A stretch of 64,000 bases of DNA from Macrostomum hystrix (Eukaryota > Animalia > Platyhelminthes), in the NCBI GenBank assembly GCA_950097015.1, contig CATNEN010000041.1, positions 2,356,001-2,420,000 of the forward strand, in the 5' to 3' direction. Shown piece by piece: positions 3,269 to 51,456 of this stretch. The translations under genes were made by a program, and so were the position numbers. Position 1 is the stretch's first letter. The number at the start of each line of letters is the position of its first letter. Below the pieces are notes generated by a model. That model was not told the origin of the DNA, did not search any database, and saw nothing but the letters and a program-made list of their open reading frames with translations.

Positions 3269-4503
3269 ATGTCTTTAGAGCTGTCCCAGCGTGTGTCTGC
3301 TGCGCGGCCCCCTCAAGGCGCGACTGCCGACCCACCTGCAGTGCAGCAGCTGCTCCCAGCCCCTGTTCAACGGCTTCCAGACTCCGCACGGATGTCGCCT
3401 GTGCCAGCCCTGCGTCACCGGCCTGCTGTCACCGGTGGAGAAGCGGCGATGTCCCGGAAACACGGAGGCCTGCAGAGACACCACGGAGGAGATCGAGGTG
3501 AGCCAGGCCTCCTGTCTTCCCGACATTGCGACGAGACGTGAGGTCGGCCGACTGAAGGTCCTGTGTCCGAACCTGCGTGCCGGCTGCTCTGCTGCACTCA
3601 GCTGGTCTGTCATGGACCAGCATCTGGACAGCTGCGACTTCCAGGCTTTGCCGTGCGAGCTCTGCGGCCAGCAGGTGACGAGGAGGGACATGCAGCGTCA
3701 CTCAACCAGAGAGTGCCTGCAGAGGAAAGTGAGCTGTGAGCTGTGCTCTCAGCAGGTGCCCTTTGGTGAGATGGAGAGCAGGCACAGGAATCTGGAGTCC
3801 GATGTGTGCTGTCCGATGTTCTCAGCTGCCTGCCCTCACTGCGGTGACCGGAGCACTCCGATGAGCAGGACAGCATACCAGGCTCACCTGTCTGACTGTC
3901 CGGAGAAACCAGTCGAGTGCAAGTACTCTCACCTGGGCTGCCAGACAAGAGCCCGAAGGTCCGAGATGGATAAGCACTACACGGAGTGCATGGACTCTCA
4001 CCTGGAGCTCGTGGACTCAAGGCTCCGACAGGCCGCGGAGCTGCCTCAGACAGCAGGTGAGCGGCACTTTATGCCTATTGATTTTTAACAGTTATTGCTT
4101 ATTTTTATTGCCCGTAATTACATAATGACATTGCACAACGGCTATCTAATTCTGGCTGTCCTGACGCGCCCGCATCGCTCCTTCATTTCCAGCAGTCGCA
4201 ATGCCGCAGTTTTCCACCAGTTCGGCGACTTCTGTCGAAAGCGGCGAGGTGGCCGACGTGAAGCGGCGAGTCGGCAGCGTGTACGACCAGGTCAAGAGGC
4301 TGCAGGTGAACGTGGCCAACTGGGCGCACAGCACAATGGAGCTCGAGCAGATGGCAGACCGGTTCGGCGGCGTGTCGCAGCTCCGGACTCTGCTGGCTCA
4401 GCTGGATGAGCGCACGAGAAATATTGAACAGCTGCAGCAGCAGCTGCAGCAACAGGTGCAGCAGCTGCAGCAGGATAGGACGCTTCCTAATTTGGAGGAT
4501 TAA
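3269..4503 (+). pseudogene. TRAF-like copy 1 (RING, TRAF zinc fingers, coiled coil, no MATH), frameshifted; exons 3269-4056 and 4193-4503
   Basis: ATG at 3269 (MSLELSQRV). A 2-bp deletion near 3328 (actgccg versus actgtgccg in the other copies) shifts the frame before the RING. The downstream frame encodes CSSC...HGCRLCQPC...RRCP and CELC/CPHC zinc fingers; phase-1 intron 4057-4192; exon 2 coiled coil ends TAA. The deletion could be a sequencing error. Confidence 0.8.
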
Positions 4504-5290
4504 TGTTAGATGATTGGATGATTGGACTGCCAAAGGTTTAACTTTCTGAAAGCTGGCTTAGCCATAGATATGTTGTACGGCTTTGCTCAGCACTTGTCTA
4601 TGTTTTATACAGATTAGCATCTTTCTGTTGCTCAACTTCCAAGCATTTCTGGCAAAATTTTTGTATCACTTGACTATTTGTGCTATTCAGTACTGCAAAT
4701 TGTAGGGTTGATTCTTACACTACCCACCATTCTATTATCCAATCTTGATTTCAGGCTTGAAGACCCCGCACCGCTGCATTTTCAAGGCCAAGTGGCTAGA
4801 TATTTGCAAAATTCAATATTTTTAACCAAATATTTTTTGCTACATATTTTTTGTTGTAAGTAGTTGACGTTTTCATCTCGTTGATTTCAATAAACATCTG
4901 CAGGCATTTTGGCACAGCAGTGTGCTCTGGTGTCTTTAGCTGGCCGATCGCAGAATATCGCAGAAATGCAACTGGAAGGTCTTAACAGCATTCTCTGTTT
5001 GGTTTCGTTGACTTGCGCAATGCAGTCTAAATTTAGACGGTCACTATTGTGAAACTGCTTCTGCACTGATTGCTAACTAGTGCTTGCCGCTGGTGCAATG
5101 CATTGTGTTTGGTATGTAAAAGTGTTTTTATTACTGTTAGCATCAGCAATATTACTGATGTTATTACAGTTCAAAGTACACTGTAGTCCATGCTTCATTG
5201 CTGTGATAGCAACCAGTGACAATATTTTCCCACTAGGGTTAGGATAGAATCTTGAGAGATCGCCGTGGACTGAGAGGCCGCCACACTCCG

Positions 5291-6790
5291 AATTCTAGAC
5301 AACCTGCTGCTGACATCCATTTCACTGCTGCTCCAAATTCTAGACAACCTGCTGCTGACATCCATTTCACTGCTGCTCCAAATTCTAGACAACCTGCTGC
5401 TGACATCCATTTCACTGCTGCTCCAAATTCTATACAACCTGCTGCTGACATCCATTTCACTGCTGCTCCAAATTCTAGACAACCTGCTGCTGACATCCAT
5501 TTCCCTGCTGCTCCAAATTCTAAAGAACCTGCTGCTGACATCCATTTCACTGCTGCTCCAAATTCTAGACAACCTGCTGCTGACATCCATTTCACTGCTG
5601 CTCCAAATTCTAGACAACCTGCTGCTGACATCCATTTCACTGCTGCTCCAAATTCTAGACAACCTGCTGCTGACATCCATTTCACTGCTGCTCCAAATTC
5701 TAAAGAACCTGCTGCTGACATCCATTTCACTGCTGCTCCAAATTCTAAAGAACCTGCTGCTGACATCCATTTCACTGGTGCTCCAAATTCTAGACAACCT
5801 GCTGCTGACATCCATTTCACTGCTGCTCCAAATTCTAAGAACCTGCTGCTGACATCCATTTCACTGCTGCTCCAAATTCTAAAGAACCTGCTGCTGACAT
5901 CCATTTCACTGCTGCTCCAAATTCTAGACAACCTGCTGCTGACATCCATTTCACTGCTGCTCCAAATTCTAGACAACCTGCTGCTGACATCCATTTCACT
6001 GGTGCTCCAAATTCTAGACAACCTGCTGCTGACATCCATTTCACTGCTGCTCCAAATTCTAAAGAACCTGCTGCTGACATCCATTTCACTGCTGCTCCAA
6101 ATTCTAAAGAACCTGCTGCTGACATCCATTTCACTGCTGCTCCAAATTCTAAAGAACCTGCTGCTGACATCCATTTCCCTGCTGCTCCAAATTCTAAAGA
6201 ACCTGCTGCTGACATCCATTTCACTGCTGCTCCAAATTCTAAAGAACCTGCTGCTGACATCCATTTCACTGCTGCTCCAAATTCTAGACAACCTGCTGCT
6301 GACATCCATTTCACTGCTGCTCCAAATTCTAAAGAACCTGCTGCTGACATCCATTTCACTGCTGCTCCAAATTCTAGACAACCTGCTGCTGACATCCATT
6401 TCACTGCTGCTCCAAATTCTAAAGAACCTGCTGCTGACATCCATTTCACTGCTGCTCCAAATTCTAGACAACCTGCTGCTGACATCCATTTCACTGCTGC
6501 TCCAAATTCTAGACAACCTGCTGCTGACATCCATTTCACTGCTGCTCCAAATTCTAAAGAACCTGCTGCTGACATCCATTTCACTGCTGCTCCAAATTCT
6601 AGACAACCTGCTGCTGACATCCATTTCACTGCTGCTCCAAATTCTAGACAACCTGCTGCTGACATCCATTTCACTGCTGCTCCAAATTCTAGACAACCTG
6701 CTGCTGACATCCATTTCACTGCTGCTCCAAATTCTAGACAACCTGCTGCTGACATCCATTTCACTGCTGCTCCAAATTCTAAACAACCTG
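5291..6790. repeat. 45-bp minisatellite (about 33 copies)
   Basis: Unit ccaaattctagacaacctgctgctgacatccatttcactgctgct with a taaaga variant. Confidence 0.97.
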
Positions 6791-6796
6791 TCCAAG

Positions 6797-8482
6797 TGTG
6801 TGTCCACAGCTGATCCTGCAGTGTGTCCACAGCTGATCCAGTGTGTGTCCACAGCTGATCCAGTGTGTGTCCACAGCTGATCCAGTGTGTGTCCACAGCT
6901 GATCCAGTGTGTGTCCACAGCTGATCTAGTGTGTGTCCACAGCTGATCCAGTGTGTGTCCACAGCTGATCCAGTGTGTGTCCACAGCTGATCCAGTGTGT
7001 GTCCACAGCTGATCTAGTGTGTGTCCACAGCTGATCCAGTGTGTGTCCACAGCTGATCTAGTGTGTGTCCACAGCTGATCCAGTGTGTGTCCACAGCTGA
7101 TCCAGTGTGTGTCCACAGCTGATCCAGTGTGTGTCCACAGCTGATCCAGTGTGTGTCCACAGCTGATCCAGTGTGTGTCCACAGCTGATCCAGTGTGTGT
7201 CCACAGCTGATCCAGTGTGTGTCCACAGCTGATCTAGTGTGTGTCCACAGCTGATCCAGTGTGTGTCCACAGCTGATCCAGTGTGTGTCCACAGCTGATC
7301 CAGTGTGTGTCCACAGCTGATCCAGTGTGTGTCCACAGCTGATCCAGTGTGTGTCCACAGCTGATCCAGTGTGTGTCCACAGCTGATCCAGTGTGTGTCC
7401 ACAGCTGATCCAGTGTGTGTCCACAGCTGATCTAGTGTGTGTCCACAGCTGATCCAGTGTGTGTCCACAGCTGATCTAGTGTGTGTCCACAGCTGATCCA
7501 GTGTGTGTCCACAGCTGATCCAGTGTGTGTCCACAGCTGATCCAGTGTGTGTCCACAGCTGATCCAGTGTGTGTCCACAGCTGATCTAGTGTGTGTCCAC
7601 AGCTGATCCAGTGTGTGTCCACAGCTGATCCAGTGTGTGTCCACAGCTGATCCAGTGTGTGTCCACAGCTGATCCAGTGTGTGTCCACAGCTGATCCAGT
7701 GTGTGTCCACAGCTGATCTAGTGTGTGTCCACAGCTGATCCAGTGTGTGTCCACAGCTGGTCTAGTGTGTGTCCACAGCTGATCCAGTGTGTGTCCACAG
7801 CTGATCCAGTGTGTGTCCACAGCTGATCCAGTGTGTGTCCACAGCTGATCCAGTGTGTGTCCACAGCTGATCCAGTGTGTGTCCACAGCTGATCTAGTGT
7901 GTGTCCACAGCTGATCCAGTGTGTGTCCACAGCTGATCCAGTGTGTGTCCACAGCTGATCCAGTGTGTGTCCACAGCTGATCTAGTGTGTGTCCACAGCT
8001 GATCCAGTGTGTGTCCACAGCTGATCCAGTGTGTGTCCACAGCTGATCTAGTGTGTGTCCACAGCTGATCCAGTGTGTGTCCACAGCTGATCTAGTGTGT
8101 GTCCACAGCTGATCCAGTGTGTGTCCACAGCTGATCCAGTGTGTGTCCACAGCTGATCCAGTGTGTGTCCACAGCTGATCCAGTGTGTGTCCACAGCTGA
8201 TCCAGTGTGTGTCCACAGCTGATCCAGTGTGTGTCCACAGCTGATCCAGTGTGTGTCCACAGCTGATCCAGTGTGTGTCCACAGCTGATCCAGTGTGTGT
8301 CCACAGCTGATCCAGTGTGTGTCCACAGCTGATCCAGTGTGTGTCCACAGCTGATCCAGTGTGTGTCCACAGCTGATCCAGTGTGTGTCCACAGCTGATC
8401 CAGTGTGTGTCCACAGCTGATCCTGTGTGTGTCCACAGCTGATCCAGTGTGTGTCCACAGCTGATCCAGTTTGTGTCCACAG
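6797..8482. repeat. 22-bp minisatellite (about 76 copies), directly abutting the 45-bp array
   Basis: Unit gtgtgtgtccacagctgatcca. Confidence 0.97.
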
Positions 8483-9134: not shown

Positions 9135-9375
9135 TGTAACAAACAAAAAGTGGGGAACGAACCTCGCGCTGGCAGACCGAGACCGGTTTCTGGCTTGTTT
9201 GCCTTCGTCAGTCAGCCATAGCCACACGCCGTCCTCTCCCACCACTCTCAGTGTGCACAGAAGTCTCTTTTAAGCTTGCCATTTTATGGCGATATTTTTT
9301 AGTGTTATGTGAGAGTTTTGCAGCCAAGTCTTTGCTTTTCTACTGTTGTCAGTAGTCTGAATTGTATCTTTCACA
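9135..9375 (+). mobile_element. Solo-LTR-like element, about 240 bp, TG...CA ends, 5-bp target site duplication GTCCT
   Basis: Starts TGTAAC and ends TCACA; GTCCT at 9130-9134 and 9376-9380; a second diverged copy lies inverted at 11909-12128. Confidence 0.7.
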
Positions 9376-9898: not shown

Positions 9899-12800
9899 AT
9901 GACTCTACTGCCAGTTGTTGCTCTGCTGCTTGCTCGCACAGTCGGTGAGTGCCGCAGTTCTCAAGCTGTGCTCTATGGTCTAGCGCATTTCCATGAGAAC
10001 CTTCGCTTCTTGGAACCCGGGACCCTGTTGGGAAAGAAGTCCTTTTGGGAGTCCGAGCTTCACAAACTACAGCGCAATATTGAAAGTAATTCAGAGCACC
10101 GCAATGGAACCCGGCCACTCAGAAGTTAGATCTCGCAATATTCAAAAGAAAAGCAGTTCCGTTGTAAAAGGCACTCCATGAAAATTGTGCAGGCTCTATC
10201 ATCCCATTTGTGAATAATTCTAAAACAGGAAGCTTGCGCTTGAACGAAGCTTGTGAACCAGTGCTTAGAGCTTTGGGATTGAAGGGAGCTTGTGAACCAG
10301 TGCTTAGAGCTTTTGGATTGAAGGGAGCTTGTGAACCAGTGCTTAGAGCTTTGGGATTGAAGGGAGCTTGTGAACCAGTGCTTAGAGCTTTGGGATTGAA
10401 GGGAGCTTGTGAACCAGTGCTTAGAGCTTTGGGATTGAAGGGAGCTTGTGAACCAGTGCTTAGAGCTTTTGGATTGAAGGGAGCTTGTGAACCAGTGCTT
10501 AGAGCTTTGGGATTGAAGGGAGCTTGTGAACCAGTGCTTAGAGCTTTGGGATTGAAGGGAGCTTGTGAACCAGTGCTTAGAGCTTTGGGATTGAAGGGAG
10601 CTTGTGAACCAGTGCTTAGAGCTTTGGGATTGAAGGGAGCTTGTGAACCAGTGCTTAGAGCTTTTGGATTGAAGGGAGCTTGTGAACCAGTGCTTAGAGC
10701 TTTGGGATTGAAGGGAGCTTGTGAACCAGTGCTTAGAGCTTTGGGATTGCTCTGCCACTGCCAGTCACCCTCACAAGGTCAATATTTGATTTAGCTATGT
10801 TTTTAGCATCCAGAAAATTGTCTGAGCAACTCGCTCACTTCCACCTTTGCTCCGTCATGAATTACTTATTGAAAACTAAAGTCTCCATTTGGCATGCGCC
10901 TGGAATGAGAATGTCGCAGTAATAATCCTGAAAATGGAAATGTTCGAACTATACCTCAAAATCCGATTCAGTTCTCTCACTCACCGAAATCTGTTGTAGG
11001 AACGAACGCTTTGAGCAGCGGCTCAACCAGACGTTTCGAATTGGTGGTGAATGGCTCTGTGGGTTTTGACGCCTTCGTGAGCAGCAGCTTGTTCTTCGAG
11101 TCCAATGTCCAGCAAGACAGGCGGTGCCTGATGTCGTGCCACATGAGCGACTGCGCAGTCGCCGTTTTCAACAGGACCGACCGCGTCTGTCAGCTGGTCG
11201 TCATCAACTCTGTGGCGTGGGGCAGGCCCGGGCCGGAGGGCAGTCACGCAGCCAGGAACCTCACCGCGGCTGATGGAATGGCGATCTGGAAGTCAGACGA
11301 CTTCGAGCAGCAACTGCTGGCAAGGTCGCCCAGTCGATTTCTGGTCTTTTCGAGTGAGTTGAATATGATTTTGAAAGAATAGTCAAGCAGTGAACCTAAT
11401 CATTCTTGCAAGGTGACCGTGCGCACTGGAACATCATTTGGCGACAATCGATCCACAGCTTGCTCGAAGGTAATTCTGCTTATTGCACTGACCCAAGAGC
11501 ACATAGACTCTCACGCACACATGGATACGCATACCGGCACACTCTTGCACAGGTGACAGGTGTGACTCTTCATCGAGAAGCATTCAATCAACAAGAGTAC
11601 ACATCTTAGCCATGGGTGTTAGTCCTAATGTGTGTAATTTAGTTGTAAGTCTTGGTGCCCTGCCCTCACAAAGAGACCTAAATGACTGGGGACCTCGCTG
11701 CGGATTCGAGCTCAAGGACCTTGGTGCAAGAGTCGCACGCGCTCCGCCACTCACTCCGGATATCAAGTGATTGCAATTCAGAAAACATTCGAGTTCATGG
11801 ACAAAGAGTTCCAAGCCTCTGTGCTCTAAAGACGCGTTCAGACTGTCATCAATAGAGGCAAAAACCCACAATTAGACTTCCTTTTTAGGGCCATACATTT
11901 GAAAATTATGTGAGAGATACAATTGAGACTACTGACAACAGTAGAACAGCAAAGACTTGGCTGCAAAACTCTCACATAACACTAAAAAAGTATCGCCATA
12001 AAAATGCACACTGAGAGTGGTGGGAGAGGACTGCGTGTGGCTATGGCTGACTGATGAAGGCAAACAAGCCAGAAACCGGTCTCGGTCTGCCAGCGCGAGG
12101 TTCGTTCCCCACTTTTAAGTGTGTTACACATCACATAAATGTACACAAAGAACAAGTAATTTGACGGCTGTGTGTACGAACCTAATGCTAATTTGAAAGA
12201 AAAAAAATCTGTGTCTGAGACAAACGTACATTCGGTACATAGTTAGCGAATTTGATGGCTGAGCATCGAAATGCACTATGCCACTAAATGCATGCACAAT
12301 ATAACTACATGTATGTCAGTAAGTTTCCCTAATGCTACTGGTGTTAGCAAGTGCAGGCATTGATTAGGTGGGTTTGTTTGAGTATTTAGCTCGGCACTAG
12401 GTGGCACACTGCTGACTCTTTGGTGCCAGTACTTTGGCGCTTCCATTCCATTGTTAATGTAGCATTGCTTGGGCTTCTCGAATCAAGATTTCGATCCTGT
12501 GTGCCTTTGGAGAATAAATGTGCCCTGTTTCCCTCCCTTCAGGCAGCGGTTCGGGCAGGTTCGGAACTGTCCAGAACGTCACCATCAGCGTTCCCGGCTG
12601 CTACCGCATCGAGGCCTTCGGAGCTGCAGGCGGAAACACAAACAGCTTAATTGGCGGCAAGGGCGCTTCAGCTGCTGGCAGCTTCGAGCTCACCGCCGGC
12701 ACTCAACTCAGCATTGTTGTCGGCCAGGCGGGCGGAAGCCTGGGTTGCTACTACGGTGCTGGCGGTGGTGGCGGAAGCTTCGTGTACATCAGCAGCGTCA

Positions 12801-13495
12801 CTGGCGGTCCGCAGCTGCTGGTGGCAGCCGGAGGCGGAGGAGGCGCGGGGGCCTACTACAATGGTGAGCTTTTCTTCAACACAATCAGCGCATCACAGCA
12901 GAAAATCGATGCGCTCAAAACAGCTCACGAGTAGCTAAATTTTTCCAGATAAAAAACGATATCACATTGCTCTTTGTCCCTAGGCTTTCCTGGAGATGGC
13001 GGGACCAGCGGCACGAACTCGAATCCCAGTGGAAGTACGTACACCGGCAGTAGCGGGACCGGAGGACAGCCAGGACGCGTGCCAACAAGCCTGGCCTCTC
13101 TATCCGGGTATGTGTACGCCTGCGGTGGTCCCGGTGCTGGATGGAACGGCACGGGTGTTCAGTGCAATGCCTCGGTGTACGGCGGACCCGGACTGGGCCG
13201 CACCGGCAGCTGGCTCGGCGGAACTCACGTGCCTCCGTGCCCTACCGGCGATGGCGGTTTCGGTGGAGGCGGTTCTGGAGGCGGCGGAGGTGGCGGCTGC
13301 TGCGTTGGTGGTCAAATCGGACCGGGCGGTGGCGGTGGCGGCTACAGCGGCGGAGGCGCCGCCTCGGATGCCGGCCATGCAGGCGGCGGAGGCGGCTCGT
13401 TCTGCAGCGGCCTCGGCTGCGTCACAGCCAGCGGGGTCAACTTGGAGCAGCACGGCAGAGTGCGGCTTAACTGGACGGCAGCCGCGTGCGTGTGA
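9899..13495 (+). CDS. Predicted secreted protein: signal peptide, PAN/apple-like Cys domain, ALK/LTK-type glycine-rich domain; exons 9899-9944, 11000-11353, 12543-12863, 12984-13495
   Basis: MTLLPVVALLLART exon ends at G|gtgagt. Exon 2 has CLMSC...DC.VAVFN...VCQL (PAN-like). Exons 3-4 have VQNVTISVPGCYRIEAFGAAGG, FELTAGTQLSIVVGQAGG, GGGGSFV, LLVAAGGGGGAG and GGGGSF...GRVRL, typical of the ALK/LTK-like glycine-rich domain. All three introns are phase 1 and compatible. Confidence 0.8.
10248..10750. repeat. 39-bp minisatellite (about 13 copies) in intron 1 of the secreted-protein gene
   Basis: Unit gcttgtgaaccagtgcttagagctttgggattgaaggga. Confidence 0.96.
11470..11755 (-). mobile_element. tRNA-derived SINE, diverged copy
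   Basis: Shares cggattcgagctcaaggaccttggtgcaagag (box-B-like head on the minus strand) and body motifs with the copies at 38.2, 41.7 and 56.0 kb. Boundaries approximate. Confidence 0.55.
11909..12128 (-). mobile_element. Second copy of the solo-LTR-like element, inverted, no clear TSD
   Basis: Reverse complement of 9135-9375 with a small internal deletion; ends TGTGA... and ...GTTACA. Confidence 0.65.
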
Positions 13496-13510
13496 AGGAA
13501 TTTAGAATGC

Positions 13511-15643: not shown

Positions 15644-16879
15644 TCAATTCCTACGCTGGGGACCACGTTGTGCCTGTTGCTCCAGCACTTGTACTTGCTG
15701 CTGCAGTGCTTGCACCTGCTGCTGCAGCAGCTCAGCGCATCTCGACCGCTCATCCAGCTGACTCAGCAGAGTTCGCAAACGATCGACACCACCAAATTTG
15801 TCAACCAGTTCATCAAGCTCAACGGTGCTCTGCGCCCAGTTGGCCACGTTCACCTGCAGCCGCTTGAATTTCTGCACCAGGTTGCCAACCCGACGGTTCG
15901 CTTCTGCGACCTCGGCATTGTCTGCAGATAGCGAAGACCGACCGACTGAAACTGCAACAGGTGAAGAGTTTCAGAGAGCTGATTGAAGCAAAGAACTGAT
16001 CAGCACACGCCTGCCAGCCTCTGCTGATTTGCTAATCAAGTCCAATATTGAAATAGTTGAGTACACAATGTCACAATGTCAACTGTCCTCACCGGGTGCC
16101 TGCGGCTCACTGGCCGACTGTATAAGCACTGAGTCCAACAGCTCCATGTGAGAGTCCGTGCATTGCTGATAATGATTATCCAGCTCAGATCTTCGGACTC
16201 TCACTTTACAGCCCAGGTGAGAGTACTTGCACTCAACTGGCTTCTCCGGACATTCAGACAGGTGAGCCAGGTACGAGTTTCTGTCGAGCCTTAGTCTCGG
16301 GCTTCGGCAGTGAGGGCAAGCAGCCGAGAACATCGGACAGCACACATCGGACTCCAGATTCCTGTGCCTGCTCTCCATCTCGCTGATGATCACCTGTTGA
16401 GTACACTTGCCGCATCGCTCCTTTCTCTGCAGGCACTCTCTGTTGGAGTGGCGCTGCATGTCCCTCCTCGTCACCTGCTGGCCGCAGAGCTCGCACGGCA
16501 AAGCCTGGAAGTCGCAGCTGTCCAGATGCTGGTCCATGAGAGACCAGCTGAGTGCGGCAGAGCAGCCGGCATGCAGGTTCGGACACAGGACCTTCAGTCG
16601 GCCGACCTCACGTCTCGTCGCAATGTCGGGAAGACAGGAGGCCTGGCTCACCTCGATCTCCTCCGTGGTGTCTCTGCAGGCCTCCGTGTTTCCGGGACAT
16701 CGCCGCTTCTCCACCGGTGACAGCAGGCCGGTGACGCAGGGCTGGCACAGGCGACATCCGTGCGGAGTCTGGAAGCCGTTGAACAGAGGCTGGGAGCAGC
16801 TGCTGCACTGCAGGTGGCTCGGCACAGTCGCGCCTTGAGGGGGCCGCGCACCTGACACTCGCTTGGGCAACTCAGACAT
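15644..16879 (-). CDS. TRAF-like copy 2, intact, MATH-less; exons 16879-16093 and 15951-15644
   Basis: MSELPKRV start, RING and zinc fingers, donor G|gtgagg, acceptor ttgcag|, exon 2 coiled coil (KRLQVNVANWAQST) ending TGA. Confidence 0.88.
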
Positions 16880-20031: not shown

Positions 20032-21189
20032 CTATGGCCTCTGCTGCAGCTGCTGGACCTGCTGTTGCAGCTGCTGGACCTGCCGCTGCAGCTGATCGAC
20101 TAGGCTCGAGCGCTCGTCCAACGTAGTGAGCAGAGCACACAGCTGGGAGATCCCACCGAACCGCTCAGCCATCTGTTGGAGCTCCATGGTGCCATTAGCC
20201 CAGTTCGCGACATTGATCTGCAGCCTCTTGAACTGGTCGTAAATGCTTTCCAAACGCCGGTTCGTATCTGCGAGCTCATGACTGTCATCATTCGCTGCTG
20301 GACCCGCAGATGAGTGTGCCACTGTTCGGTATTAATGCAAATGATGAGAGAATTAAAGTAAAATACTGACGAGAAAAGCTAAAGTCAACTGCCTACCTTC
20401 CGCCTGACTTGCTTGCCTAAGCACTGAGTTCATCAGCTCAAGATGAGAGTCCGTGCATTGCTGGTAATGCTTATCAAGCTCAGATCTTAGGCCTCTCGCT
20501 TTACAGCCCAGGTGAGAGTACTTGCACTCGACTGGCCTCCCTGGACAGTCAGACAGGTGAGCCAGGTATGCTGTCCTGCTCATCGGAGTGCTCCGGTCAC
20601 TGCAGTGAGGACAGACAGCTGAGAACATCGGACAGCACACATCGGACTCCAGATTCCTGTGCCTGCTCTCCATCTCGCTGATGATCACCTGTTGAGTACA
20701 CTTGCCGCATCGCTCCTTTCTCTGCAGGCACTCTCTGTTGGAGTGGCGCTGCATGTCCCTCCTCGTCACCTGCTGGCCGCAGAGCTCGCACGGCAAAGCC
20801 TGGAAGTCGCAGCTGTCCAGATGCTGGTCCATGAGAGACCAGCTGAGTGCGGCAGAGCAGCCGGCACGCAGGTTCGGACACAGGACCTTCAGTCGGCCGA
20901 CCTCGCGTCTCGTCGCAATGTCGGGAAGACAGGAGGCCTGGCTCACCTCGATCTCCTCCGTGGTGTCTCTGCAGGCCTCCGTGTTTCCGGGACATCGCCG
21001 CTTCTCCACCGGTGACAGCAGGCCGGTGACGCAGGGCTGGCACAGGCGACATCCGTGCGGAGTCTGGAAGCCGTTGAACAGGGGCTGGGAGCAGCTGCTG
21101 CACTGCAGGTGGGTCGGCACAGTCGCGCCTTGAGGGGGCCGCGCAGCAGACACTCGCTTGGGCAGCTCTGCCACTTTGCTTGTGCTTAC
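20032..21189 (-). CDS. TRAF-like copy 3, MATH-less, no ATG of its own; exons 21189-20397 and 20321-20032
   Basis: Frame open from acceptor ttttacag|GTA AGC ACA AGC AAA GTG GCA GAG CTG CCC; GTG stands where other copies have ATG; an in-frame TAA lies just upstream of the acceptor; 75-bp phase-1 intron; exon 2 ends TAG. Confidence 0.75.
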
Positions 21190-24403: not shown

Positions 24404-24638
24404 CTGCAGAGATAATAAACAGCTGGACGAGAGACAGAAGAGGAAAAGTTAAATAATGGTTTTGGCCTCCTTAGTTACTAAATATTGCGGCATTTGTAAC
24501 AAAGCACCTTTCTAAGCTAGACATGCCAAAAATGTATTTATTTTTTGCTGTCTGAGAGCCTTTGGAGCGAAGGGTGAACTCTGGTAAGTGTAGTTTAAAA
24601 CATTCGCCACGCTCATTAGTAAAATTAAAGGAATGAAA

Positions 24639-33087: not shown

Positions 33088-33649
33088 CAAGCAATTGCTA
33101 ATAAAGCCTGCCCAGTCTTCTACAGTTCTGAAAAATATTTATAGGCTCTCCCAGACTGACATTTGACTTGGCTGGAAAAAAGGACGGAATTTTCCATTAT
33201 ATTCACGTTTCATTGCTAAAAATATATTTCTCACATGCCCTCCAGTGTACAAGCGGCGGTGCATGCATGCAGGTGACATGCAGCTGGGTTGTTGAACTAC
33301 CTTGTAGATTGAAGTGCCAAAATTAATGCGAGCGTTGCGAGCGCAAATACGAGCTATACTCCAAAAAGTATATTTATAGAGCCTGAGCCACCAGTGCTCT
33401 GATAACGCGTTGCTAGATCGCACACGTGAATGTTGGTGTGATTCACTGCGAGGCCAGAATCAAGAGTATAAATATTTTTGTTGCTAGGACTAGTGCATCA
33501 AATTATACCCAACCACGCAATACGAAAATAGGATTCTTCGATAGGCTGCTAGGCTACCACAAGGAAATATAATAGGGCTGGTCAATGATATCATTCTCAA
33601 CGACTTGGTAAGGATTCTGATGAATTCTGATAAATCTGAAGGATTTGCT

Positions 33650-35215
33650 AAGGATTCTGATGATGGATTCTGATGAATTCCTAAGGATTTCCCTAGGATT
33701 ATGATGGATTCTGAGGGATTCCTAAGGATTTCCCTAGGATTATGATGGATTCTGATGAATTCCTAAGGATTTCCCTAGGATTATGATGGATTCTGATGAA
33801 TTCCTAAGGATTTCCCTAGGATTATGATGGATTCTGATGAATTCCTAAGGATTTCCCTAGGATTATGATGGATTCTGATGAATTCCTAAGGATTTCCCTA
33901 GGATTATGATGGATTCTGATGAATTCCTAAGGATTTCCCTAGGATTATGATGGATTCTGATGAATTCCTAAGGATTTCCCTAGGATTATGATGGATTCTG
34001 ATGAATTCCTAAGGATTTCCCTAGGATTATGATGGATTCTGAGAGATTCGTTAAGGTTCCGAAGTATTCTGAGTGCTTTAACAATGATTAGGATTGATTT
34101 TTAAGGATTTTACTTAGGATTATGATGGAAACTTAAGGAGTTGCTTAGGATTATGATGGAAACTTAAGGAGTTGCTTAGGATTATGATGGAAACTTAAGG
34201 AGTTGCTTAGGATTATGATGGAAACTTAAGGAGTTGCTTAGGATTATGGATTCTTAAGGATTTACATAGGATGATGGATTCTTAAGGATTTACATAGGAT
34301 GATGGATTCTTAAGGATTTACATAGGATGATGGATTCTTAAGGATTTACATAGGATGATGGATTCTTAAGGATTTACATAGGATGATGGATTCATAAGGA
34401 TTTACATAGGATGATGGATTCATAAGGATTTACATAGGATGATGGATTCTTAAGGATTTACATAGGATGATGGATTACTAAGGATTTACATAGGATGATG
34501 GATTCTTAAGGATTTACATAGGATGATGGATTCTTAAGGATTTACATAGGATGATGGATTCATAAGGATTTACATAGGATGATGGATTACTAAGGATTTA
34601 CATAGGATGATGGATTCTTAAGGATTTACATAGGATGATGGATTCTTAAGGATTTACATAGGATGATGGATTCATAAGGATTTACATAGGATGATGGATT
34701 CTTAAGGATTTACATAGGATGATGTATTCTTAAGGATTTACATAGGATGATGGATTCTTAAGGATTTACATAGGATGATGGATTCATAAGGATTTACATA
34801 GGATGATGGATTCTTAAGGATTTACATAGGATGATGGATTCATAAGGATTTACATAGTATGATGGATTACTAAGGATTTACATAGGATGATGGATTCTTA
34901 AGGATTTACATAGGATGATGGATTCTTAAGGATTTACATAGGATGATGGATTACTAAGGATTTACATAGGATGATGGATTCTTAAGGATTTACATAGGAT
35001 GATGGATTCTTAAGGATTTACATAGGATGATGGATTCATAAGGATTTACATAGGATGATGGATTCTTAAGGATTTACATAGGATGATGGATTCTTAAGGA
35101 TTTACATAGGATGATGGATTCTTAAGGATTTACATAGGATGATGGATTCTTAAGGATTTACATAGGATGATGGATTCTTAAGGATTTACATAGGATGATG
35201 GATTCATAAGGATTC
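33650..35215. repeat. Composite minisatellite of related 41-bp, 32-bp and 28-bp units
   Basis: cctaaggatttccctaggattatgatggattctgatgaatt, then cttaaggagttgcttaggattatgatggaaa-type units, then ggatgatggattcttaaggatttacata. Confidence 0.95.
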
Positions 35216-35637: not shown

Positions 35638-36867
35638 TCAATGCACCTGCTGCTGCAGCTGTTGCAGCTGTTGCTGCAGTCGTGCCAGCTGTTGCTGCAG
35701 CTGATCAATGCACCTGGTGCGCTCATCCAGCTGAGCCAGCAGAGTCCGAAGCTGCGACACGCCGCCGAACCGGTCTGCCATCTGCTCGAGCTCATTGGTG
35801 CTGTGCGCCCAGTTGGCCACGTTCACCTGCAGCCTCTTGAACTGGTCGTACACGCTGCCGACTCGCCGCTTCACGTCGGCCAACTCTCGGCTTTCGACAG
35901 GAGTCGCCGAGCTGGCCGAAGACTGCGACACTGCGAACGCTAAAATGCAAAGGCAAGGAGAGGAGGCGAACGTCTGTCAGCGAAAATTCGTTCTTGCTTT
36001 GAGTCACATAACGGAGCTCTCAGCCTTGTGTCTGGAATTGTGATATCACTTGTGCTAAGGCAACAGCGAGAGCATTTCACCTGCTGTCTGAGGCAGCATC
36101 GCGGCCTGTCGGAGCCTTGAGTCCACGAGCTCCAGGTGAGAGTCCATGCATTCCCTGTAGTGCTTATCCATCTCGGACCTTCGGGCTCTTGTCTGGCAGC
36201 CCAGGTGAGAGTACTTGCACTCGACTGGCCTCTCTGGACAGTCAGACAGGTGAGCCAGGTATGCTGGCCTGTTCATCGGAGTGCTCCGGTCACCGCAGTG
36301 AGGACAGGCAGCTGAGAACATCGGACAGCACACATCGGACTCCAGATTCCTGTGCCTGCTCTCCATCTCACCAAAGGGCACCTGCTGAGAGCACAGCTCA
36401 CAGCTCACTTTCCTCTGCAGGCACTCTCTGTTGGAGTGGCGCTGCATGTCCCTCCTCGTCACCTGCTGGCCGCAGAGCTCGCACGGCAAAGCCTGGAAGT
36501 CGCAGCTGTCCAGATGCTGGTCCATGAGAGACCAGCTGAGTGCAGCAGAGCAGCCGACACGCAGGTTCGGACACAGGACCTTCAGTCGGCCGACCTCGCG
36601 TCTCGTCGCAATGTCGGGAAGACAGGAGGCCTGGCTCACCTCGATCTCCTCCGTGGTGTCTCTGCAGGCCTCCGTGTTTCCGGGACATCGCCGCTTCTCC
36701 ACCGGTGACAGCAGGCCGGTGACGCAGGGCTGGCACAGGCGACATCCGTGCGGAGTCTGGAAGCCGTTGAACAGGGGCTGGGAGCAGCTGCTGCACTGCA
36801 GGTGAGTCGGCACAGTCGCCTCTTGAGGGGACCGCGCATCAGACACTCGCTTGGGCAGTTCTGACAT
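35638..36867 (-). CDS. TRAF-like copy 5, MATH-less; exons 36867-36081 and 35939-35638
   Basis: Intact RING and zinc-finger exon, donor G|gtgaaa, acceptor ttttag|, coiled-coil exon ending QQVH* at an internal tandem duplication. Confidence 0.88.
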
Positions 36868-39009: not shown

Positions 39010-39890
39010 CACGAAACCAACCACAAAACACAGCAGCGTAGGCTTTCAGCATCGCTCCTGACGAAACCAACCACAAAACACAGCAGCGAAGGCTTTCAGC
39101 ATCGCTCCTGACGAAACCAACCACAAAACACAGCAGCGAAGGCTTTCAGCATCGCTCCTGACGAAACCAACCACAAAACACAGCAGCGAAGGCTTTCAGC
39201 ATCGCTCCTGACGAAGCCAACCACAAAACACAGCAGCGTAGGCTTTCAGCATCGCTCCTGACGAAGCCAACCACAAAACACAGCAGCGTAGGCTTTCAGC
39301 ATCGCTCCTGACGAAGCCAACCACAAAACACAGCAGCGTAGGCTTTCAGCATCGCTCCTGACGAAGCCAACCACAAAACACAGCAGCGTAGGATTTCAGC
39401 ATCGCTCCTGACGAAGCCAACCACAAAACACAGCAGCGTAGGCTTTCAGCATCGCTCCTGACGAAACCAACCACAAAACACAGCAGCGAAGGCTTTCAGC
39501 ATCGCTCCTGACGAAGCCAACCACAAAACACAGCAGCGTAGGCTTTCAGCATCGCTCCTGACGAAACCAACCACAAAACACAGCAGTGTAGGCTTTCAGC
39601 ATCGCTCCTGACGAAGCCAACCACAAAACACAGCAGCGAAGGCTTTCAGCATCGCTCCTGACGAAATCAACCACAAAACACAGCAGTGTAGGCTTTCAGC
39701 ATCGCTCCTGACGAAGCCAACCACAAAACACAGCAGCGTAGGATTTCAGCATCGCTCCTGACGAAGCCAACCACAGAACAGACAGCGTAGGATTTCAGCA
39801 TCTCTCCTGACGAAACCAACCACAAAACACAGCAGCGAAGGCTTTCAGCATCGCTCCTGACGAAGCCAACCACAGAACAGACAGCCTAGG
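39010..39890. repeat. 50-bp minisatellite (about 17 copies)
   Basis: Unit acgaaaccaaccacaaaacacagcagcgtaggctttcagcatcgctcctg. Confidence 0.96.
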
Positions 39891-40368
39891 ATTTCGCTGC
39901 ATCCTACCCAGTGCGAATTCCACCGCTCCAGAACTTTTCGTATTTTGTAAATGTCGGCCGCAATTTTGCGAAATCAGTAAAATGCTGGCATAATGGGCTG
40001 TCGGATGAATAAATCTATCTTCTGTGCCTCGTAATAAATCTGCTGATTAATTACTTCTTTGAATGTTTAACTACGACTACATTTTGTAAATAATTATGAA
40101 AAATAAATGAAACGAAAGAACTGGATTTATACGGGTCCCATCATTCTTGTTTTTTTATTCAATACATATTTTTCCTGCTTGAGCTAACCAGGGGGGGGCA
40201 ATTAGGGACGCATTCCAGTAAGGACAGTAAGCTAAGCTTAATTTATTAATTAGGTACATTTACACGAAAATGTACTAGATGGAGCTGAGGAAGCAATGCC
40301 TGCAAAGCTACTCGATGTATGACTACGGACTTTTACGATGTTAGTTGTTCAATGTGCTTATTACTAGC

Positions 40369-41644
40369 GGCTCAGGACAACTCTAACTGCAGGTGGTTTA
40401 AGTAGACCCTGCGGCTCAGGACAACTCTAACTACAGGTGGTTTAAGTAGACCCTGCGGCTCAGGACAACTCTAACTGCAGGTGGTTTAAGTAGACCCTGC
40501 GGCTCAGGACAACTCTAACTGCAGGTGGTTTAAGTAGACCCTGCGGCTCAGGACAACTCTAACTACAGGTGGTTTAAGTAGACCCTGCGGCTCAGGACAA
40601 CTCTAACTACGGGTGGTTTAAGTAGACCCTGCGGCTCAGGACAACTCTAACTGCAGGTGGTTTAAGTAGACCCTGCGGCTCAGGACAACTGTAACTACAG
40701 GTGGTTTAAGTAGACCCTGCGGCTCAGGACAACTCTAACTACAGGTGGTTTAAGTAGACCCTGCGGCTCAGGACAACTCTAACTGCAGGTGGTTTAAGTA
40801 GACCCTGCGGCTCAGGAAAACTCTAACTGCAGGTGGTTTAAGTAGACCCTGCGGCTCAGGACAACTGTAACTACAGGTGGTTTAAGTAGACCCTGCGGCT
40901 CAGGACAACTCTAACTGCATGTGGTTTAAGTAGACCCTGCGGCTCAGGACAACTCTAACTGCAGGTGGTTTAAGTAGACCCTGCGGCTCAGGACAACTCT
41001 AACTGCAGGTGGTTTAAGTAGACCCTGCGGCTCAGGACAACTGTAACTACAGGTGGTTTAAGTAGACCCTGCGGCTCAGGACAACTCTAACTGCAGGTGG
41101 TTTAAGTAGACCCTGCGGCTCAGGACAACTCTAACTGCAGGTGGTTTAAGTAGACCCTGCGGCTCAGGACAACTCTAACTGCAGGTGGTTTAAGTAGACC
41201 CTGCGGCTCAGGACAACTCTAACTGCAGGTGGTTTAAGTAGACCCTGCGGCTCAGGACAACTCTAACTGCAGGTGGTTTAAGTAGACCCTGCGGCTCAGG
41301 ACAACTCTAACTACAGGTGGTTTAAGTAGACCCTGCGGCTCAGGACAACTCTAACTGCAGGTGGTTTAAGTAGACCCTGCGGCTCAGGACAACTCTAACT
41401 GCAGGTGGTTTAAGTAGACCCTGCGGCTCAGGACAACTCTAACTGCAGGTGGTTTAAGTAGACCCTGCGGCTCAGGACAACTCTAACTACAGGTGGTTTA
41501 AGTAGACCCTGCGGCTCAGGACAACTCTAACTGCAGGTGGTTTAAGTAGACCCTGCGGCTAAGGACAACTCTAACTGCAGGTGGTTTAAGTAGACCCTGC
41601 GGCTCAGGACAACTCTAACTGCAGGTGGTTTAAGTAGACCCTGC
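40369..41644. repeat. 44-bp minisatellite (about 29 copies)
   Basis: Unit gcggctcaggacaactctaactgcaggtggtttaagtagaccct. Confidence 0.97.
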
Positions 41645-41724
41645 TCACCGTTTTCTCATGTGACTAATTTCTCACTTTCGAACGATGATTTGTGGAAGCA
41701 CAAGTTTTAACGCAATTGTCTGAT

Positions 41725-45637: not shown

Positions 45638-47632
45638 ATGTCTTTCGAGCTGAACAAGCGAGTGTCAGGTGCGCGGCCTCCTCAAGGCGCGACTGTGCCG
45701 ACCCACCTGCAGTGCAGCAGCTGCTCCCAGCCCCTGTTCAACGGCTTCCAGACTCCGCACGGATGTCGCCTGTGCCAGCCCTGCGTCACCGGCCTGCTGT
45801 CACCGGTGGCGAAGCGGCGATGTCCCGGAAACATGGAGGCCTGCAGAGACACCACGGAGGAGATCGAGGTGAGCCAGGCCTCCTGTCTTCCCGACATTGC
45901 GACGAGACGCGAGGTCGGCCGACTGAAGGTCCTGTGTCCGAACCTGCGTGCCGGCTGCTCTGCCGCACTCAGCTGGTCTCTCATGGACCAGCATCTGGAC
46001 AGCTGCGACTTCCAGGCTTTGCCGTGCGAGCTCTGCGGCCAGCAGGTGACGAGGAGGGACATGCAGCGCCACTCAACCAGAGAGTGCCTGCAGAGGAAAG
46101 TGAGCTGTGAGCTGTGCTCTCAGCAGGTGCCCTTTGGTGAGATGGAGAGCAGGCACAGGAATCTGGAGTCCGATGTGTGCTGTCCGATGTTCTCAGCTGC
46201 CTGCCCTCACTGCAGTGACCGGAGCACTCCGATGAGCAGGACAGCATACCTGGCTCACCTGTCTGACTGTCCGGAGAAGGTTCAGCAGCAAGTTCAGCAG
46301 CAAGTTCAGCAGCAGGTTCAGCAGCAGGTTCAGCAGCAGGTTCAGCAGCAGGTTCAGCAGCAGGTTCAGCAGCAGGTTCAGCAGCAGGTTCAGCAGCAGG
46401 TTCAGCAGCAGGTTCAGCAGCAGGTTCAGCAGCAGGTTCAGCAGCAGGTTCAGCAGCAGGTTCAGCAGCAGGTTCAGCAGCAGGTTCAGCAGCAGGTTCA
46501 GCAGCAGGTTCAGCAGCAGGTTCAGCAGCAGGTTCAGCAGCAGGTTCAGCAGCAGGTTCAGCAGCAGGTTCAGCAGCAGGTTCAGCAGCAGGTTCAGCAG
46601 CAGGTTCAGCAGCAGGTTCAGCAGCAGGTTCAGCAGCAGGTTCAGCAGCAGGTTCAGCAGCAGGTTCAGCAGCAGGTTCAGCAGCAGGTTATGTGTGCTC
46701 TATCTATCGCTCTAAAGGGGACACTTTCAAAGGAGACACTTTCAAAGGAGACACTTTCAAAGGAGACACTTTCAAAGGAGACACTTTCAAAGGAGACACT
46801 TTCAAAGGAGACACTTTCAAAGGAGACACTTTCAAAGGAGACACTTTCAAAGGAGACACTTTCAAAGGAGACACTTTCAAAGGAGACACTTTCAAAGGAG
46901 ACACTTTCAAAGGAGACACTTTCAAAGGAGACACTTTCAAAGGAGACACTTTCAAAGGAGACACTTTCAAAGGAGACACTTTCAAAGGAGACACTTTCAA
47001 AGGAGACACTTTCAAAGGAGACACTTTCAAAGGAGACACTTTCAAAGGAGACACTTTCAAAGGAGACACTTTCAAAGGAGACACTTTCAAAGGAGACACT
47101 TTCAAAGGAGACACTTTCAAAGGAGACACTTTCAAAGGAGACACTTTCAAAGGAGACACTTTCAAAGGAGACACTTTCAAAGGAGACACTTTCAAAGGAG
47201 ACACTTTCAAAGGAGACACTTTCAAAGGAGACACTTTCAAAGGAGACACTTTCAAAGGAGACACTTTCAAAGGAGACACTTTCAAAGGAGACACTTTCAA
47301 AGGAGACACTTTCAAAGGAGACACTTTCAAAGGAGACACTTTCAAAGGAGACACTTTCAAAGGAGACACTTTCAAAGGAGACACTTTCAAAGGAGACACT
47401 TTCAAAGGAGACACTTTCAAAGGAGACACTTTCAAAGGAGACACTTTCAAAGGAGACACTTTCAAAGGAGACACTTTCAAAGGAGACACTTTCAAAGGAG
47501 ACACTTTCAAAGGAGACACTTTCAAAGGAGACACTTTCAAAGGAGACACTTTCAAAGGAGACACTTTGCCCATTCTGGGGCTTCCGTTTCATCGAAGGCA
47601 TGCAAATAGAAACTTTGAAAGACATAAACTAG
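45638..47632 (+). CDS. TRAF-like copy 7: RING and zinc fingers to HLSDCPEK, then in-frame (QQVQ)n and (SKETL)n repeats; probably truncated or non-functional
   Basis: 664-aa open frame; TRAF homology stops at 46279. Confidence 0.6.
   Translation: MSFELNKRVSGARPPQGATVPTHLQCSSCSQPLFNGFQTPHGCRLCQPCVTGLLSPVAKRRCPGNMEACRDTTEEIEVSQASCLPDIATRREVGRLKVLCPNLRAGCSAALSWSLMDQHLDSCDFQALPCELCGQQVTRRDMQRHSTRECLQRKVSCELCSQQVPFGEMESRHRNLESDVCCPMFSAACPHCSDRSTPMSRTAYLAHLSDCPEKVQQQVQQQVQQQVQQQVQQQVQQQVQQQVQQQVQQQVQQQVQQQVQQQVQQQVQQQVQQQVQQQVQQQVQQQVQQQVQQQVQQQVQQQVQQQVQQQVQQQVQQQVQQQVQQQVQQQVQQQVQQQVQQQVQQQVQQQVMCALSIALKGTLSKETLSKETLSKETLSKETLSKETLSKETLSKETLSKETLSKETLSKETLSKETLSKETLSKETLSKETLSKETLSKETLSKETLSKETLSKETLSKETLSKETLSKETLSKETLSKETLSKETLSKETLSKETLSKETLSKETLSKETLSKETLSKETLSKETLSKETLSKETLSKETLSKETLSKETLSKETLSKETLSKETLSKETLSKETLSKETLSKETLSKETLSKETLSKETLSKETLSKETLSKETLSKETLSKETLSKETLSKETLSKETLCPFWGFRFIEGMQIETLKDIN
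46280..46690. repeat. 12-bp repeat (gttcagcagcag)n, about 34 copies
   Basis: Directly visible; encodes VQQQ in the TRAF frame. Confidence 0.97.
46717..47567. repeat. 15-bp perfect repeat (gagacactttcaaag)n, about 56 copies
   Basis: Directly visible and homogeneous. Confidence 0.97.
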
Positions 47633-49845: not shown

Positions 49846-51456
49846 ATGTCACTTCAAGAACTGCCTCAGCGAGTGTCGGGTGCACGGCCCCATCAAGACG
49901 CGACTGTGCCGACCCACCTGCAGTGCAGCAGCTGCTCCCAGCCCCTGTTCAACGGCTTCCAGACTCCGCACGGATGTCGTCTGTGCCAGCCCTGCGTCAC
50001 CGGCCTGCTGTCACCGGTGGAGAAGCGGCGATGTCCCGGAAACACGGAGGCCTGCAGAGACACCACGGAGGAGATCGAGGTGAGCCAGGCCTCCTGTCTT
50101 CCCGACATTGCGACGAGACGTGAGGTCGGCCGACTGAAGGTCCTGTGTCCGAACCTGCGTGCCGGCTGCTCTGCCGCACTCAGCTGGTCTCTCATGGACC
50201 AGCATCTGGACAGCTGCGACTTCCAGGCTTTGCCGTGCGAGCTCTGCGGCCAGCAGGTGACGAGGAGGGACATGCAGCGCCACTCCAACAGAGAGTGCCT
50301 GCAGAGGAAGGAGCGATGCGGCAAGTGTACTCAACAGGTGATCATCAGCGAGATGGAGAGCAGGCACAGGAATCTGGAGTCCGATGTGTGCTGTCCGATG
50401 TTCTCGGCTGCCTGTCCTCACTGCCGCAATTCGAAAAGGAAATTCGATAGACGCGCGTACCTGGCCCACCTTTCAGAGTGCCCAGAGAGGCCAGTCGAGT
50501 GCAAGTACTATCGCCTGGGCTGCCGAGTGACAGTCTCTCGATCCGAGCTCGAAAAACACTACCGGGAGGGCTCGGACTCGCACATTTGTCTGCTGGATAT
50601 GAAGCTCAGGATGATTGGGTCTTCGTCTTCGACACCTCAGCCTAAACTTTCAGTGCCCTCTTCAAGCAGTCCCACTGAGATTTCCGATCTCAAGCGCCGG
50701 GTAGACTACATCAACTCGGCCTTCAAGAAGATGCAGGTCAGTGTGGCCAACTGGGCGCACACGATGCTTGAATTCGAGCAGTTGGCCGACAACTTCGGCG
50801 GCATCTCCCGGATGCGCGAGTCACTGCAGAGCTGTAGCGAGCGAGTTAGCCAGCTAGAGAGTCGCACTGGTGCTTCGAGACATCGCGTCGATGCTTTGCA
50901 AGCGTCGAGACCCGTGATGCTGCCGCAGGACTCTCAGCTGCAGCAGCTAGCGGGAAAGCTCGAGACTCGCCTGCTCAATCTGGAGAACACCAGCTACGAC
51001 GGCACCTTCATCTGGAGAGTGAGAAACCTCACGGAGAGCCGTTCACAGAAGCCAATCGAGTCGATTCCGTTCTTCCTTCGCCGATTCGGCCCCGCCTTCC
51101 GAATTCAATTGTACCTGAGTGGCGCGGGTGCAGGATCCGGCACTCACCTGTCCGTATACCTTGTGAACGTCCCTTACCAGCTTGATGACCCATCTGACTG
51201 GCCGATTGTTGCCGAGGCCACCTTCCGGCTAATAAATCTGAAAGATCGGCGACAAGACATTGTAAAGACCATTTCTATCAACACAGTCGACGAGAAGCGA
51301 CAGGCAGCTGAAGACGACTTCTTGATGTGCTGCGGGGAGCCCCGACTGCTGCCGCTTTCCGAGTTCAATGAGCGGTTCACCAAGGAGGACTGCTGCTTTC
51401 TCAAGGTGGAGGTCAGGGCAGTTGGTAGTGGGCGCGACCGCAGGACGGATCGATGA
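49846..51456 (+). CDS. Full-length intronless TRAF-family protein (RING, TRAF zinc fingers, coiled coil, MATH/TRAF-C), 536 aa; copy 8
   Basis: C-terminus LENTSYDGTFIWRV...IESIPFF...FRIQLYLSGAGAGSGTHLSVYL...DWP...TFRLIN...CGEPRLLPL..FTKEDCCFLKVEV is a TRAF-type MATH domain. No one-to-one ortholog assigned. Confidence 0.93.
   Translation: MSLQELPQRVSGARPHQDATVPTHLQCSSCSQPLFNGFQTPHGCRLCQPCVTGLLSPVEKRRCPGNTEACRDTTEEIEVSQASCLPDIATRREVGRLKVLCPNLRAGCSAALSWSLMDQHLDSCDFQALPCELCGQQVTRRDMQRHSNRECLQRKERCGKCTQQVIISEMESRHRNLESDVCCPMFSAACPHCRNSKRKFDRRAYLAHLSECPERPVECKYYRLGCRVTVSRSELEKHYREGSDSHICLLDMKLRMIGSSSSTPQPKLSVPSSSSPTEISDLKRRVDYINSAFKKMQVSVANWAHTMLEFEQLADNFGGISRMRESLQSCSERVSQLESRTGASRHRVDALQASRPVMLPQDSQLQQLAGKLETRLLNLENTSYDGTFIWRVRNLTESRSQKPIESIPFFLRRFGPAFRIQLYLSGAGAGSGTHLSVYLVNVPYQLDDPSDWPIVAEATFRLINLKDRRQDIVKTISINTVDEKRQAAEDDFLMCCGEPRLLPLSEFNERFTKEDCCFLKVEVRAVGSGRDRRTDR

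Follow-up and report, generated by a model that had tools for sequence, protein, structure and literature searches.

The MATH domain, through which TRAF immune adaptors are linked to receptors, is what defines the family, and an array of TRAF-like genes in which that domain occurs in a single copy raises the question of what the other copies are: fresh debris of a full-length gene, or a gene type with a history of its own. We addressed this question for a 64,000-nt stretch of the genome of the flatworm Macrostomum hystrix (hereafter, the window), naming its TRAF copies c1 to c8. Comparisons with unlinked relatives in the same genome and with Macrostomum lignano make it likely that the short, MATH-less copies belong to a conserved, Macrostomum-specific subfamily of MATH-less, putative scaffolds or adaptors, with a single origin before the two species split, purifying selection on its members and gene conversion in its 5′ part.

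Eight TRAF copies and a single MATH domain

A tblastn search of the window with the c8 protein gave exactly eight TRAF N-terminal copies, on both strands and between positions 3269 and 51456, as a preliminary description of this DNA had reported (eight copies in both orientations over about 48 kb). The copies are arranged in tandem and inverted, with c8 at the edge of the array, and all eight matched the TRAF zinc-finger model zf-TRAF (PF02176; E values from 4.7e-7 to 2.6e-15, over the 27-bit cut-off). The longest of them, c8 (49846–51456, plus strand), is an intronless single open reading frame (ORF) of 536 amino acids (aa), comprising a RING-like module, two TRAF zinc fingers, a coiled coil and a MATH domain that matched PF22486 over its full model length (E 8e-20, residues 387–523). 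The nearest proteins to c8 are M. lignano TRAF-type proteins, with 38–54% identity.

No MATH domain was detected in c1 to c7 by Pfam, by tblastn or by a hidden Markov model (HMM) search of the whole contig with PF22486. The same HMM search over the whole assembly gave 31 matches, only one of them on this contig, at 51004–51414 of the window. The three methods thus agree with the earlier claim that MATH is confined to copy 8, and the c8 match being alone on the contig speaks against an unseen MATH exon to which short copies might splice.

In c1, c2, c3, c5 and c6 the ORF is broken at the same codon by a phase-1 GT-AG intron of 75–141 nt, followed by a second exon of about 100 codons. This exon contains the block ..ADVKRRVG..LQVNVANWAH..FGGVSQLR..DER.., followed by Gln-rich L/V-x3-L-x2-L heptads and by a stop within a few codons of the last heptad. 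Conservation of the exon-2 block with full-length TRAFs, together with the heptads, indicates a coiled coil after the zinc fingers; against Pfam, exon 2 gave generic coiled-coil matches only. The layout of a short TRAF is, then, a RING-like module, TRAF zinc fingers and a coiled-coil exon of about 100 residues ending in three Q-rich heptads.

Three copies, all on the minus strand, are intact: c2 (16879–15644; exon 1 16879–16093, a 141-nt GT-AG phase-1 intron, exon 2 15951–15644), c5 (36867–35638; exon 1 36867–36081, a 141-nt intron, exon 2 35939–35638) and c6 (44446–43205; exon 1 44446–43660, exon 2 43518–43205). Copies c5 and c6 are 99% identical across 1222 bp, intron included, and their tails differ by a 21-nt tandem repeat. 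These three had been described as clean two-exon genes with their own stop codons, and their phase-1 intron and their stop after the Q-rich heptads fit that description. Of the seven MATH-less genes counted previously, all seven are present in the window, but no more than these three are intact.

Between most copies homology begins within a few bases of the ATG, with no relationship further upstream; shared upstream sequence is confined to two pairs, c1 with c4 (about 520 bp) and c1 with c7 (about 70 bp). The intergenic DNA between TRAF copies is otherwise unrelated.

Age and constraint of the short type

Two further short TRAFs, unlinked to the array, lie on another contig, C38, at 3.889 Mb (L005) and 34.289 Mb (L006). 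Both are intact, with the same phase-1 intron and a stop after Q-rich heptads. A canonical full-length TRAF, L004 (genome G000, C38:4715916–4717562), is intronless and 78% identical to M. lignano P0002, and near it lies a full-length paralog, L007 (C38:4778455–4779864), whose zinc-finger region is shorter and whose MATH domain has diverged. Both L004 and L007 align to c8 in a single frame. The phase-1 GT-AG intron is present in c1, c2, c3, c5, c6, L005, L006 and M. lignano copies, and absent from c8.

A matching cluster occupies about 48 kb of M. lignano NIVC01000672.1 (loci L010 and L012), where eight or more short TRAFs form two orientation blocks. The two copies checked for it have the same phase-1 GT-AG intron, and four have the same stop position. 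The MATH region of c8 found no match in this region of about 48 kb.

A maximum-likelihood tree of a 78-residue coiled-coil block resolved into two clades, both supported at 100/100: a full-length one (c8, L004, L007 and M. lignano P0002) and a short one, whose 13 rows come from both species. Within the short clade c2, whose exon 2 is of the same sublineage as those of L006 and M. lignano P0004, forms a subclade with these two (97/97 support). Because the tree unites short TRAFs of both species, and within them this subclade, the layout without MATH and no fewer than two of its sublineages are older than the split between M. hystrix and M. lignano, as judged from these sequences.

Exon 2 has diverged considerably while staying open. 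Pairwise dN/dS among the diverged M. hystrix short copies was 0.14–0.36, at a dS of about 0.9–2, and that of c1, c5 and c6 against four M. lignano copies was 0.13–0.25, all of them Nei-Gojobori estimates over about 90 codons with saturated dS. Between the species, exon 2 of c5 and c6 shows 76–79% identity to M. lignano P0006, against 78% for the canonical pair L004/P0002.

GenBank gene models of M. lignano come from an annotation built on RNA-seq-based transcript assemblies (PMC5730564), and two of these transcript-based models, P0004 and P0006, end at the exon-2 stop. Given this origin, they are indirect evidence that mRNAs ending at the exon-2 stop were assembled in M. lignano. The earlier view of exon 2 as diverged yet open is supported by these dS and dN/dS values, the latter being not near 1 either within the genome or between species. 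The proposal that the MATH-less copies are real, constrained genes is likewise favoured by the low exon-2 ratios, by an intron and a stop position conserved in both species and by RNA-seq-derived counterparts in M. lignano.

The remaining short copies raise the alternative that all seven are truncated, non-functional duplicates of c8, similar to one another through gene conversion alone. Four of the seven do carry lesions or truncations, and conversion homogenises the 5′ part regardless of the state of a copy. In c1 (3269–4503, plus strand; exon 1 3269–4056, exon 2 4193–4503) the ATG is retained, but the loss of 2 bp after base 56 of the coding sequence (about 3324) causes a frameshift, with splice sites and exon 2 otherwise intact; c1 is probably a recent pseudogene, or else the deletion is an assembly error. 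The c3 copy (21174–20032, minus strand; exon 1 21174–20397, a 75-nt intron, exon 2 20321–20032) starts with GTG GCA where other copies have ATG TCT, and has no in-frame ATG upstream. Copy c4 (28422–27759, minus strand) retains only the RING-like module and a portion of the zinc fingers, with no exon 2: its homology stops after 'ECP' at 27782, and nine new codons then lead to the exon end at 27759, where a strong phase-1 donor (AAG|GTAGGT) follows. In c7 (45638–47632, plus strand), also with no exon 2, N-terminal homology extends from 45638 to 46279, where it stops inside the zinc fingers after 'DCPEK', and the ORF continues across two repeat arrays, one of 12-mers (VQQQ x34) and one of 15-mers (x57); c7 is probably a remnant.

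Decay of this kind is nevertheless very improbable as an account of the array, and for c2, c5 and c6 it is already contradicted. Their exon 2, which lies outside the converted tract, is old (dS 1–2) and still open at the ratios given above; exon-2 orthologues with the same stop exist in M. lignano; and the two unlinked short paralogs on the other contig are intact as well. Since exon-2 dN/dS is low even for c1 and c3 (still 0.14–0.29 for c3), the lesions of these two copies are recent.

Gene conversion and the mosaic structure of c8

The 5′ part of the array has a different history from exon 2. Over exon-1 codons 50–150, dS was 0–0.1 for every pair among the eight copies, c8 included. After codon 150 it rose to 0.3–1.1 in a block-wise mosaic, with one version of codons 150–200 in c2, c3 and c8 and another in c1, c5, c6 and c7. 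Between the cluster and the unlinked L005 and L006, dS for the same 5′ codons was 0.2–0.9. A tree of exon 1 (a quick version) grouped the copies by species and nested c8 in the cluster beside c2 and c4, with Shimodaira–Hasegawa-like approximate likelihood ratio (SH-aLRT) support of 98–99, contradicting the coiled-coil tree on the placement of c8.

The same break is visible along c8 itself. Its codons 1 to about 246 show 88–94% DNA identity to the short copies, and its protein is 83% identical to c5 in the N-terminal part and 49% in the coiled coil, whereas its identity to the canonical TRAF is only 44–49%, whichever half is compared. In its coiled coil and MATH domain, c8 belongs with the full-length clade. 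The simplest reading of these patterns is that paralogs in both orientations have repeatedly exchanged sequence by gene conversion, within the module of RING and zinc fingers alone. Because the first 150 or so codons are homogenised among all eight copies, c8 included, we interpret c8 as a mosaic, that is, an old full-length gene whose 5′ half was overwritten by short-type sequence. If anything, the 5′ half of c8 derives from the short copies, and not the reverse.

This direction bears on the description of the short copies as derivatives of copy 8, which has to be abandoned. As conversion overwrote the 5′ half of c8, its likeness to the short copies does not make them its derivatives, and the short type is an old clade predating the species split. 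Short TRAFs are neither recent derivatives nor fresh debris of the full-length gene.

We propose a single origin of the short type, preceding the separation of M. hystrix and M. lignano, with purifying selection maintaining it in several sublineages since then. The members in the window would be at different stages: c2, c5 and c6 intact, c1 and c3 recently disabled, c4 and c7 truncated at the 3′ end, and c8 full length. Frequent conversion between paralogs would homogenise the first 150 or so codons, corresponding to the RING and the first zinc finger, in all eight copies, and would shuffle the next 100 or so in blocks, leaving c8 with a short-type 5′ half joined to its old full-length coiled coil and MATH domain.

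In every copy, the homogenised tract of exon 1 is overlapped by antisense or alternative-frame ORFs of 124–168 aa (for example, 16407–16838 and 20702–21133, plus strand, and 49893–50324, minus strand). Composition and conversion probably account for them.

Predicted function of the short proteins

The N-terminal 170 residues align to solved RING-zinc-finger fragments of TRAF6 (5VO0, E 2.4e-12; 3HCS, E 2.6e-10). When residues 21–70 of c5 were compared with the TRAF6 RING of these structures using phmmer, seven ligand positions were retained. The short proteins could oligomerise through the exon-2 coiled coil and may act as ubiquitin-ligase-like scaffolds or adaptors that, having no MATH domain, would not dock on receptor tails.

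An alternative, which concerns function and is compatible with the conserved-subfamily explanation, is that short TRAFs enter mixed coiled-coil oligomers with full-length TRAFs, of the c8 or the L004 type, and act as dominant negatives or tuners by altering docking or signalling. The first 60 or so residues of exon 2 (VNVANWAH..FGG..) are common to short and full-length proteins, c5 being 63% identical to L004 over 60 aa, and TRAF1:TRAF2 heterotrimers offer a precedent. However, the coiled coil of c8 shares only 49% identity with that of c5 and forms a long branch, the tail of Q-rich heptads is private to the short clade, and the M. lignano cluster region examined contains no full-length partner. 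A complex prediction with two c8 coiled coils and exon 2 of c5 gave a score of 0.22 (mark, 0.34), which is neither for nor against pairing. On balance, we regard this role as possible but doubtful.

Several points count against the conserved-subfamily explanation, or against the ligase-like part of it. Besides the short and saturated alignments behind the exon-2 ratios, for c2, c5 and c6 the evidence on expression, on splice junctions and on 3′ ends consists of sequence signals and of the M. lignano models. Two UniProt models of M. lignano, P0001 and P0005, part from the common TRAF sequence directly after 'FKKLQ', at a CAG|GT site within exon 2, and their continuations differ; this divergence may reflect alternative splicing, and with it alternative 3′ ends, or a prediction artefact. 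As for the RING, none of the Pfam RING models scored the N-terminus, even at an E value of 10. Relative to TRAF6, the copies have H-x-C for C-x-H at ligands 3 and 4, C-S-S-C for C-P-I-C and CPGN for CPVD, with Asn in place of the last ligand, Asp. Because these ligand and C-P-I-C positions differ from those of TRAF6, E2 binding by the variant RING is doubtful, and the statement that the RING recruits E2 enzymes is an assumption for these copies.

A lectin- and aegerolysin-like gene interleaved with the short TRAFs

A gene that we call X alternates with the short TRAFs in both species. Its intact copy in the window, X5 (33087–32335, minus strand), is a single-exon gene of 251 aa downstream of c5 on the same strand. 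A second copy, X3 (19068–18423, minus strand), lies downstream of c3, also on the same strand; with a frameshift near 18815 and its C-terminus lost, it is a probable pseudogene. The M. hystrix genome contains only these two copies, each just downstream of a short TRAF. In M. lignano two intact X genes (L010:7326–8078 and L010:13093–13857) lie between short TRAFs in the same relative position, and X5 shows 41–51% identity to them.

Direct searches with the X protein gave nothing in Pfam, in the PDB with phmmer or in a word-based protein search. A profile of three X sequences found 47 proteins in a library of 1.8 billion, several of which carry the MVL domain PF12151 (best E value 8.9e-16), and matched MVL itself (1ZHQ) with an E value of 0.0068 across both repeats of about 54 residues. 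X remained below Pfam thresholds, with no sequence-level Pfam match for its C-terminal half. An AlphaFold model from a 17-sequence alignment (pLDDT 86.8) replaced a three-sequence model whose C-terminal half had a pLDDT of 58.7. In the new model, the first half of X5 (residues 8–114) appears as two MVL-like lectin repeats, matching MVL residues 1–113 with a VIA Z of 8.0, and the second (residues 128–251) as an aegerolysin-like beta-sandwich, matching Cry34Ab1 (VIA Z 9.3), OlyA (Z 8.3; Foldseek 1.3e-4) and RahU (Z 7.5), although a Z near 8 may arise from a common sandwich arrangement. To actinoporins, this second half gave a weaker match. According to the model, X would be a lectin-like and lipid-binding-like protein, and, as far as these searches show, no described family combines MVL-like and aegerolysin-like domains in this way in an animal. 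Longer relatives of X from metagenomic data (P0010–P0012), of 440–492 aa, have an extra helical or hydrophobic tail.

Because the pairing of short TRAF and X is conserved in both species, it suggests a defence-related locus. A stronger version holds that the two form a two-gene defence cassette, in which a glycan or lipid binder would work together with a TRAF-like ubiquitin scaffold that is independent of receptors. They might be coupled through co-transcription with trans-splicing, or through occasional fusion isoforms via a KRLQ|GT site, and concerted evolution would then keep the RING/zinc-finger face uniform while the coiled-coil exons diversify. We consider such a cassette distinctly unlikely.

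Between c5 and X5, positions 33611–35214 (minus strand) hold tandem arrays of a 41-mer and a 28-mer, the units of which contain GGATTTCC-like strings.

Possible continuations beyond the short TRAFs

The divergent M. lignano models bear on a further alternative, in which some copies are the 5′ parts of longer genes, c4 being joined to beta-propeller exons in a TRAF7-like manner, and c5 or c3 to X via KRLQ|GT. For c4, WD40/beta-propeller-like ORFs that are single copy in the genome lie directly downstream (25871–27385, minus strand). From its strong phase-1 donor, phase-compatible acceptors at 27385, 27367 and 27349 lead in frame into an ORF of 274 aa, which has weak Pfam beta-propeller matches and Atlas features at 0.96 to WD40 clusters. 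On these splice signals, c4 may be spliced to the WD40-like ORFs as a TRAF7-like chimera.

For X, exon 2 of c5 has a possible internal donor, CAG|GT, after base 35827 (KRLQ|VN), the TRAF and X genes are adjacent on the same strand in both species, and P0001 joins '..FKKLQ' to the X protein via an AG 3 nt before the ATG of X. However, all intact X genes begin with their own ATG (MV..), the nearest acceptors of X5 are out of frame with the phase-0 KRLQ|GT donor, and c3 has no GT at the KRLQ site. Moreover, P0001 is visibly chimeric, with a duplicated TRAF N-terminal part, and the transcript-based GenBank models of M. lignano end at the exon-2 stop. Domain swapping is, in our view, unlikely. A TRAF-X fusion, with c3 and c5 splicing to X, is rejected as the main explanation on account of the conserved ATG of X and the unfit phases in X5.

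Other features of the window

Between c1 and c2, positions 11011–13495 (plus strand) contain ORFs with a weak PAN-domain match (E 0.011) and a match to the glycine-rich domain of ALK/LTK (PF12810, E 6.7e-8), which together look like a separate secreted-type gene. An ORF of 827 aa at 21921–24404 (minus strand) has a weak SAP-domain match near its N-terminus (E 0.0015) and continues for about 2 kb across Ser/Ala/Val-rich tandem repeats of 60–180 nt. The density of minisatellites between genes is unusual: Tandem Repeats Finder gave 32 rows scoring >200 in the window, many with 95–99% identity, and young arrays occur, for example, at 5286–8482, 39011–41644, 46278–47567 and 60123–61158.

Comparison with known systems

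A TRAF subfamily that has been without MATH since before the split of M. hystrix and M. lignano, under purifying selection, implies that the half of the protein comprising RING, zinc fingers and coiled coil has a job of its own. A literature search on natural MATH-less TRAF subfamilies turned up no relevant report. The locus also offers a clean natural case of module-specific concerted evolution, in which the 5′ part is homogenised, the full-length gene included, while the 3′ exon keeps its orthology between species. Function is directly testable in M. lignano, where transgenesis and RNA interference can be applied, and the lectin/aegerolysin-like neighbour X provides a concrete hypothesis for a flatworm defence locus.

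Canonical TRAFs of the TRAF2/3/5/6 type consist of RING, zinc fingers, coiled coil and MATH/TRAF-C, and c8 has this whole architecture. The RING-like module and zinc fingers at the N-terminus align to solved fragments of TRAF6, TRAF5, TRAF4 and TRAF2. Unlike canonical TRAFs, the short type ends after the coiled coil without MATH, its intron being private and its tail a run of Q-rich heptads; in its RING, ligands 3 and 4 are swapped and the hydrophobic residue of the TRAF6 C-P-I-C is missing.

TRAF7 is a natural MATH-less member of the family, with RING, zinc fingers, coiled coil and WD40 repeats in place of MATH. Resembling it, c4 precedes WD40-like ORFs with compatible splice phases, but c4 has no coiled-coil exon, c2, c5 and c6 have no C-terminal domain of any kind, and the putative link between c4 and the propeller, if real, was assembled independently. 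In TRAF1:TRAF2 heterotrimers, and in truncated TRAF isoforms that act as dominant negatives, a member without one module modulates the others through the coiled coil. TRAF1, which lacks the RING and keeps MATH, is the reverse of the short TRAFs.

Within free-living flatworms, the array has a parallel in the lineage-specific TRAF gene expansion of planarians, where TRAF/MATH genes were counted by their MATH domains (Swapna et al. 2018, PMC6109357). The short TRAFs differ from that expansion in being defined by the absence of MATH and in being clustered with a lectin/aegerolysin-like gene. That gene, X, resembles the Microcystis viridis lectin MVL (PDB 1ZHQ) across both repeats in its profile and also in its modelled fold, and its C-terminal half matches the fold of the aegerolysins (OlyA/PlyA, Cry34Ab1 and RahU).

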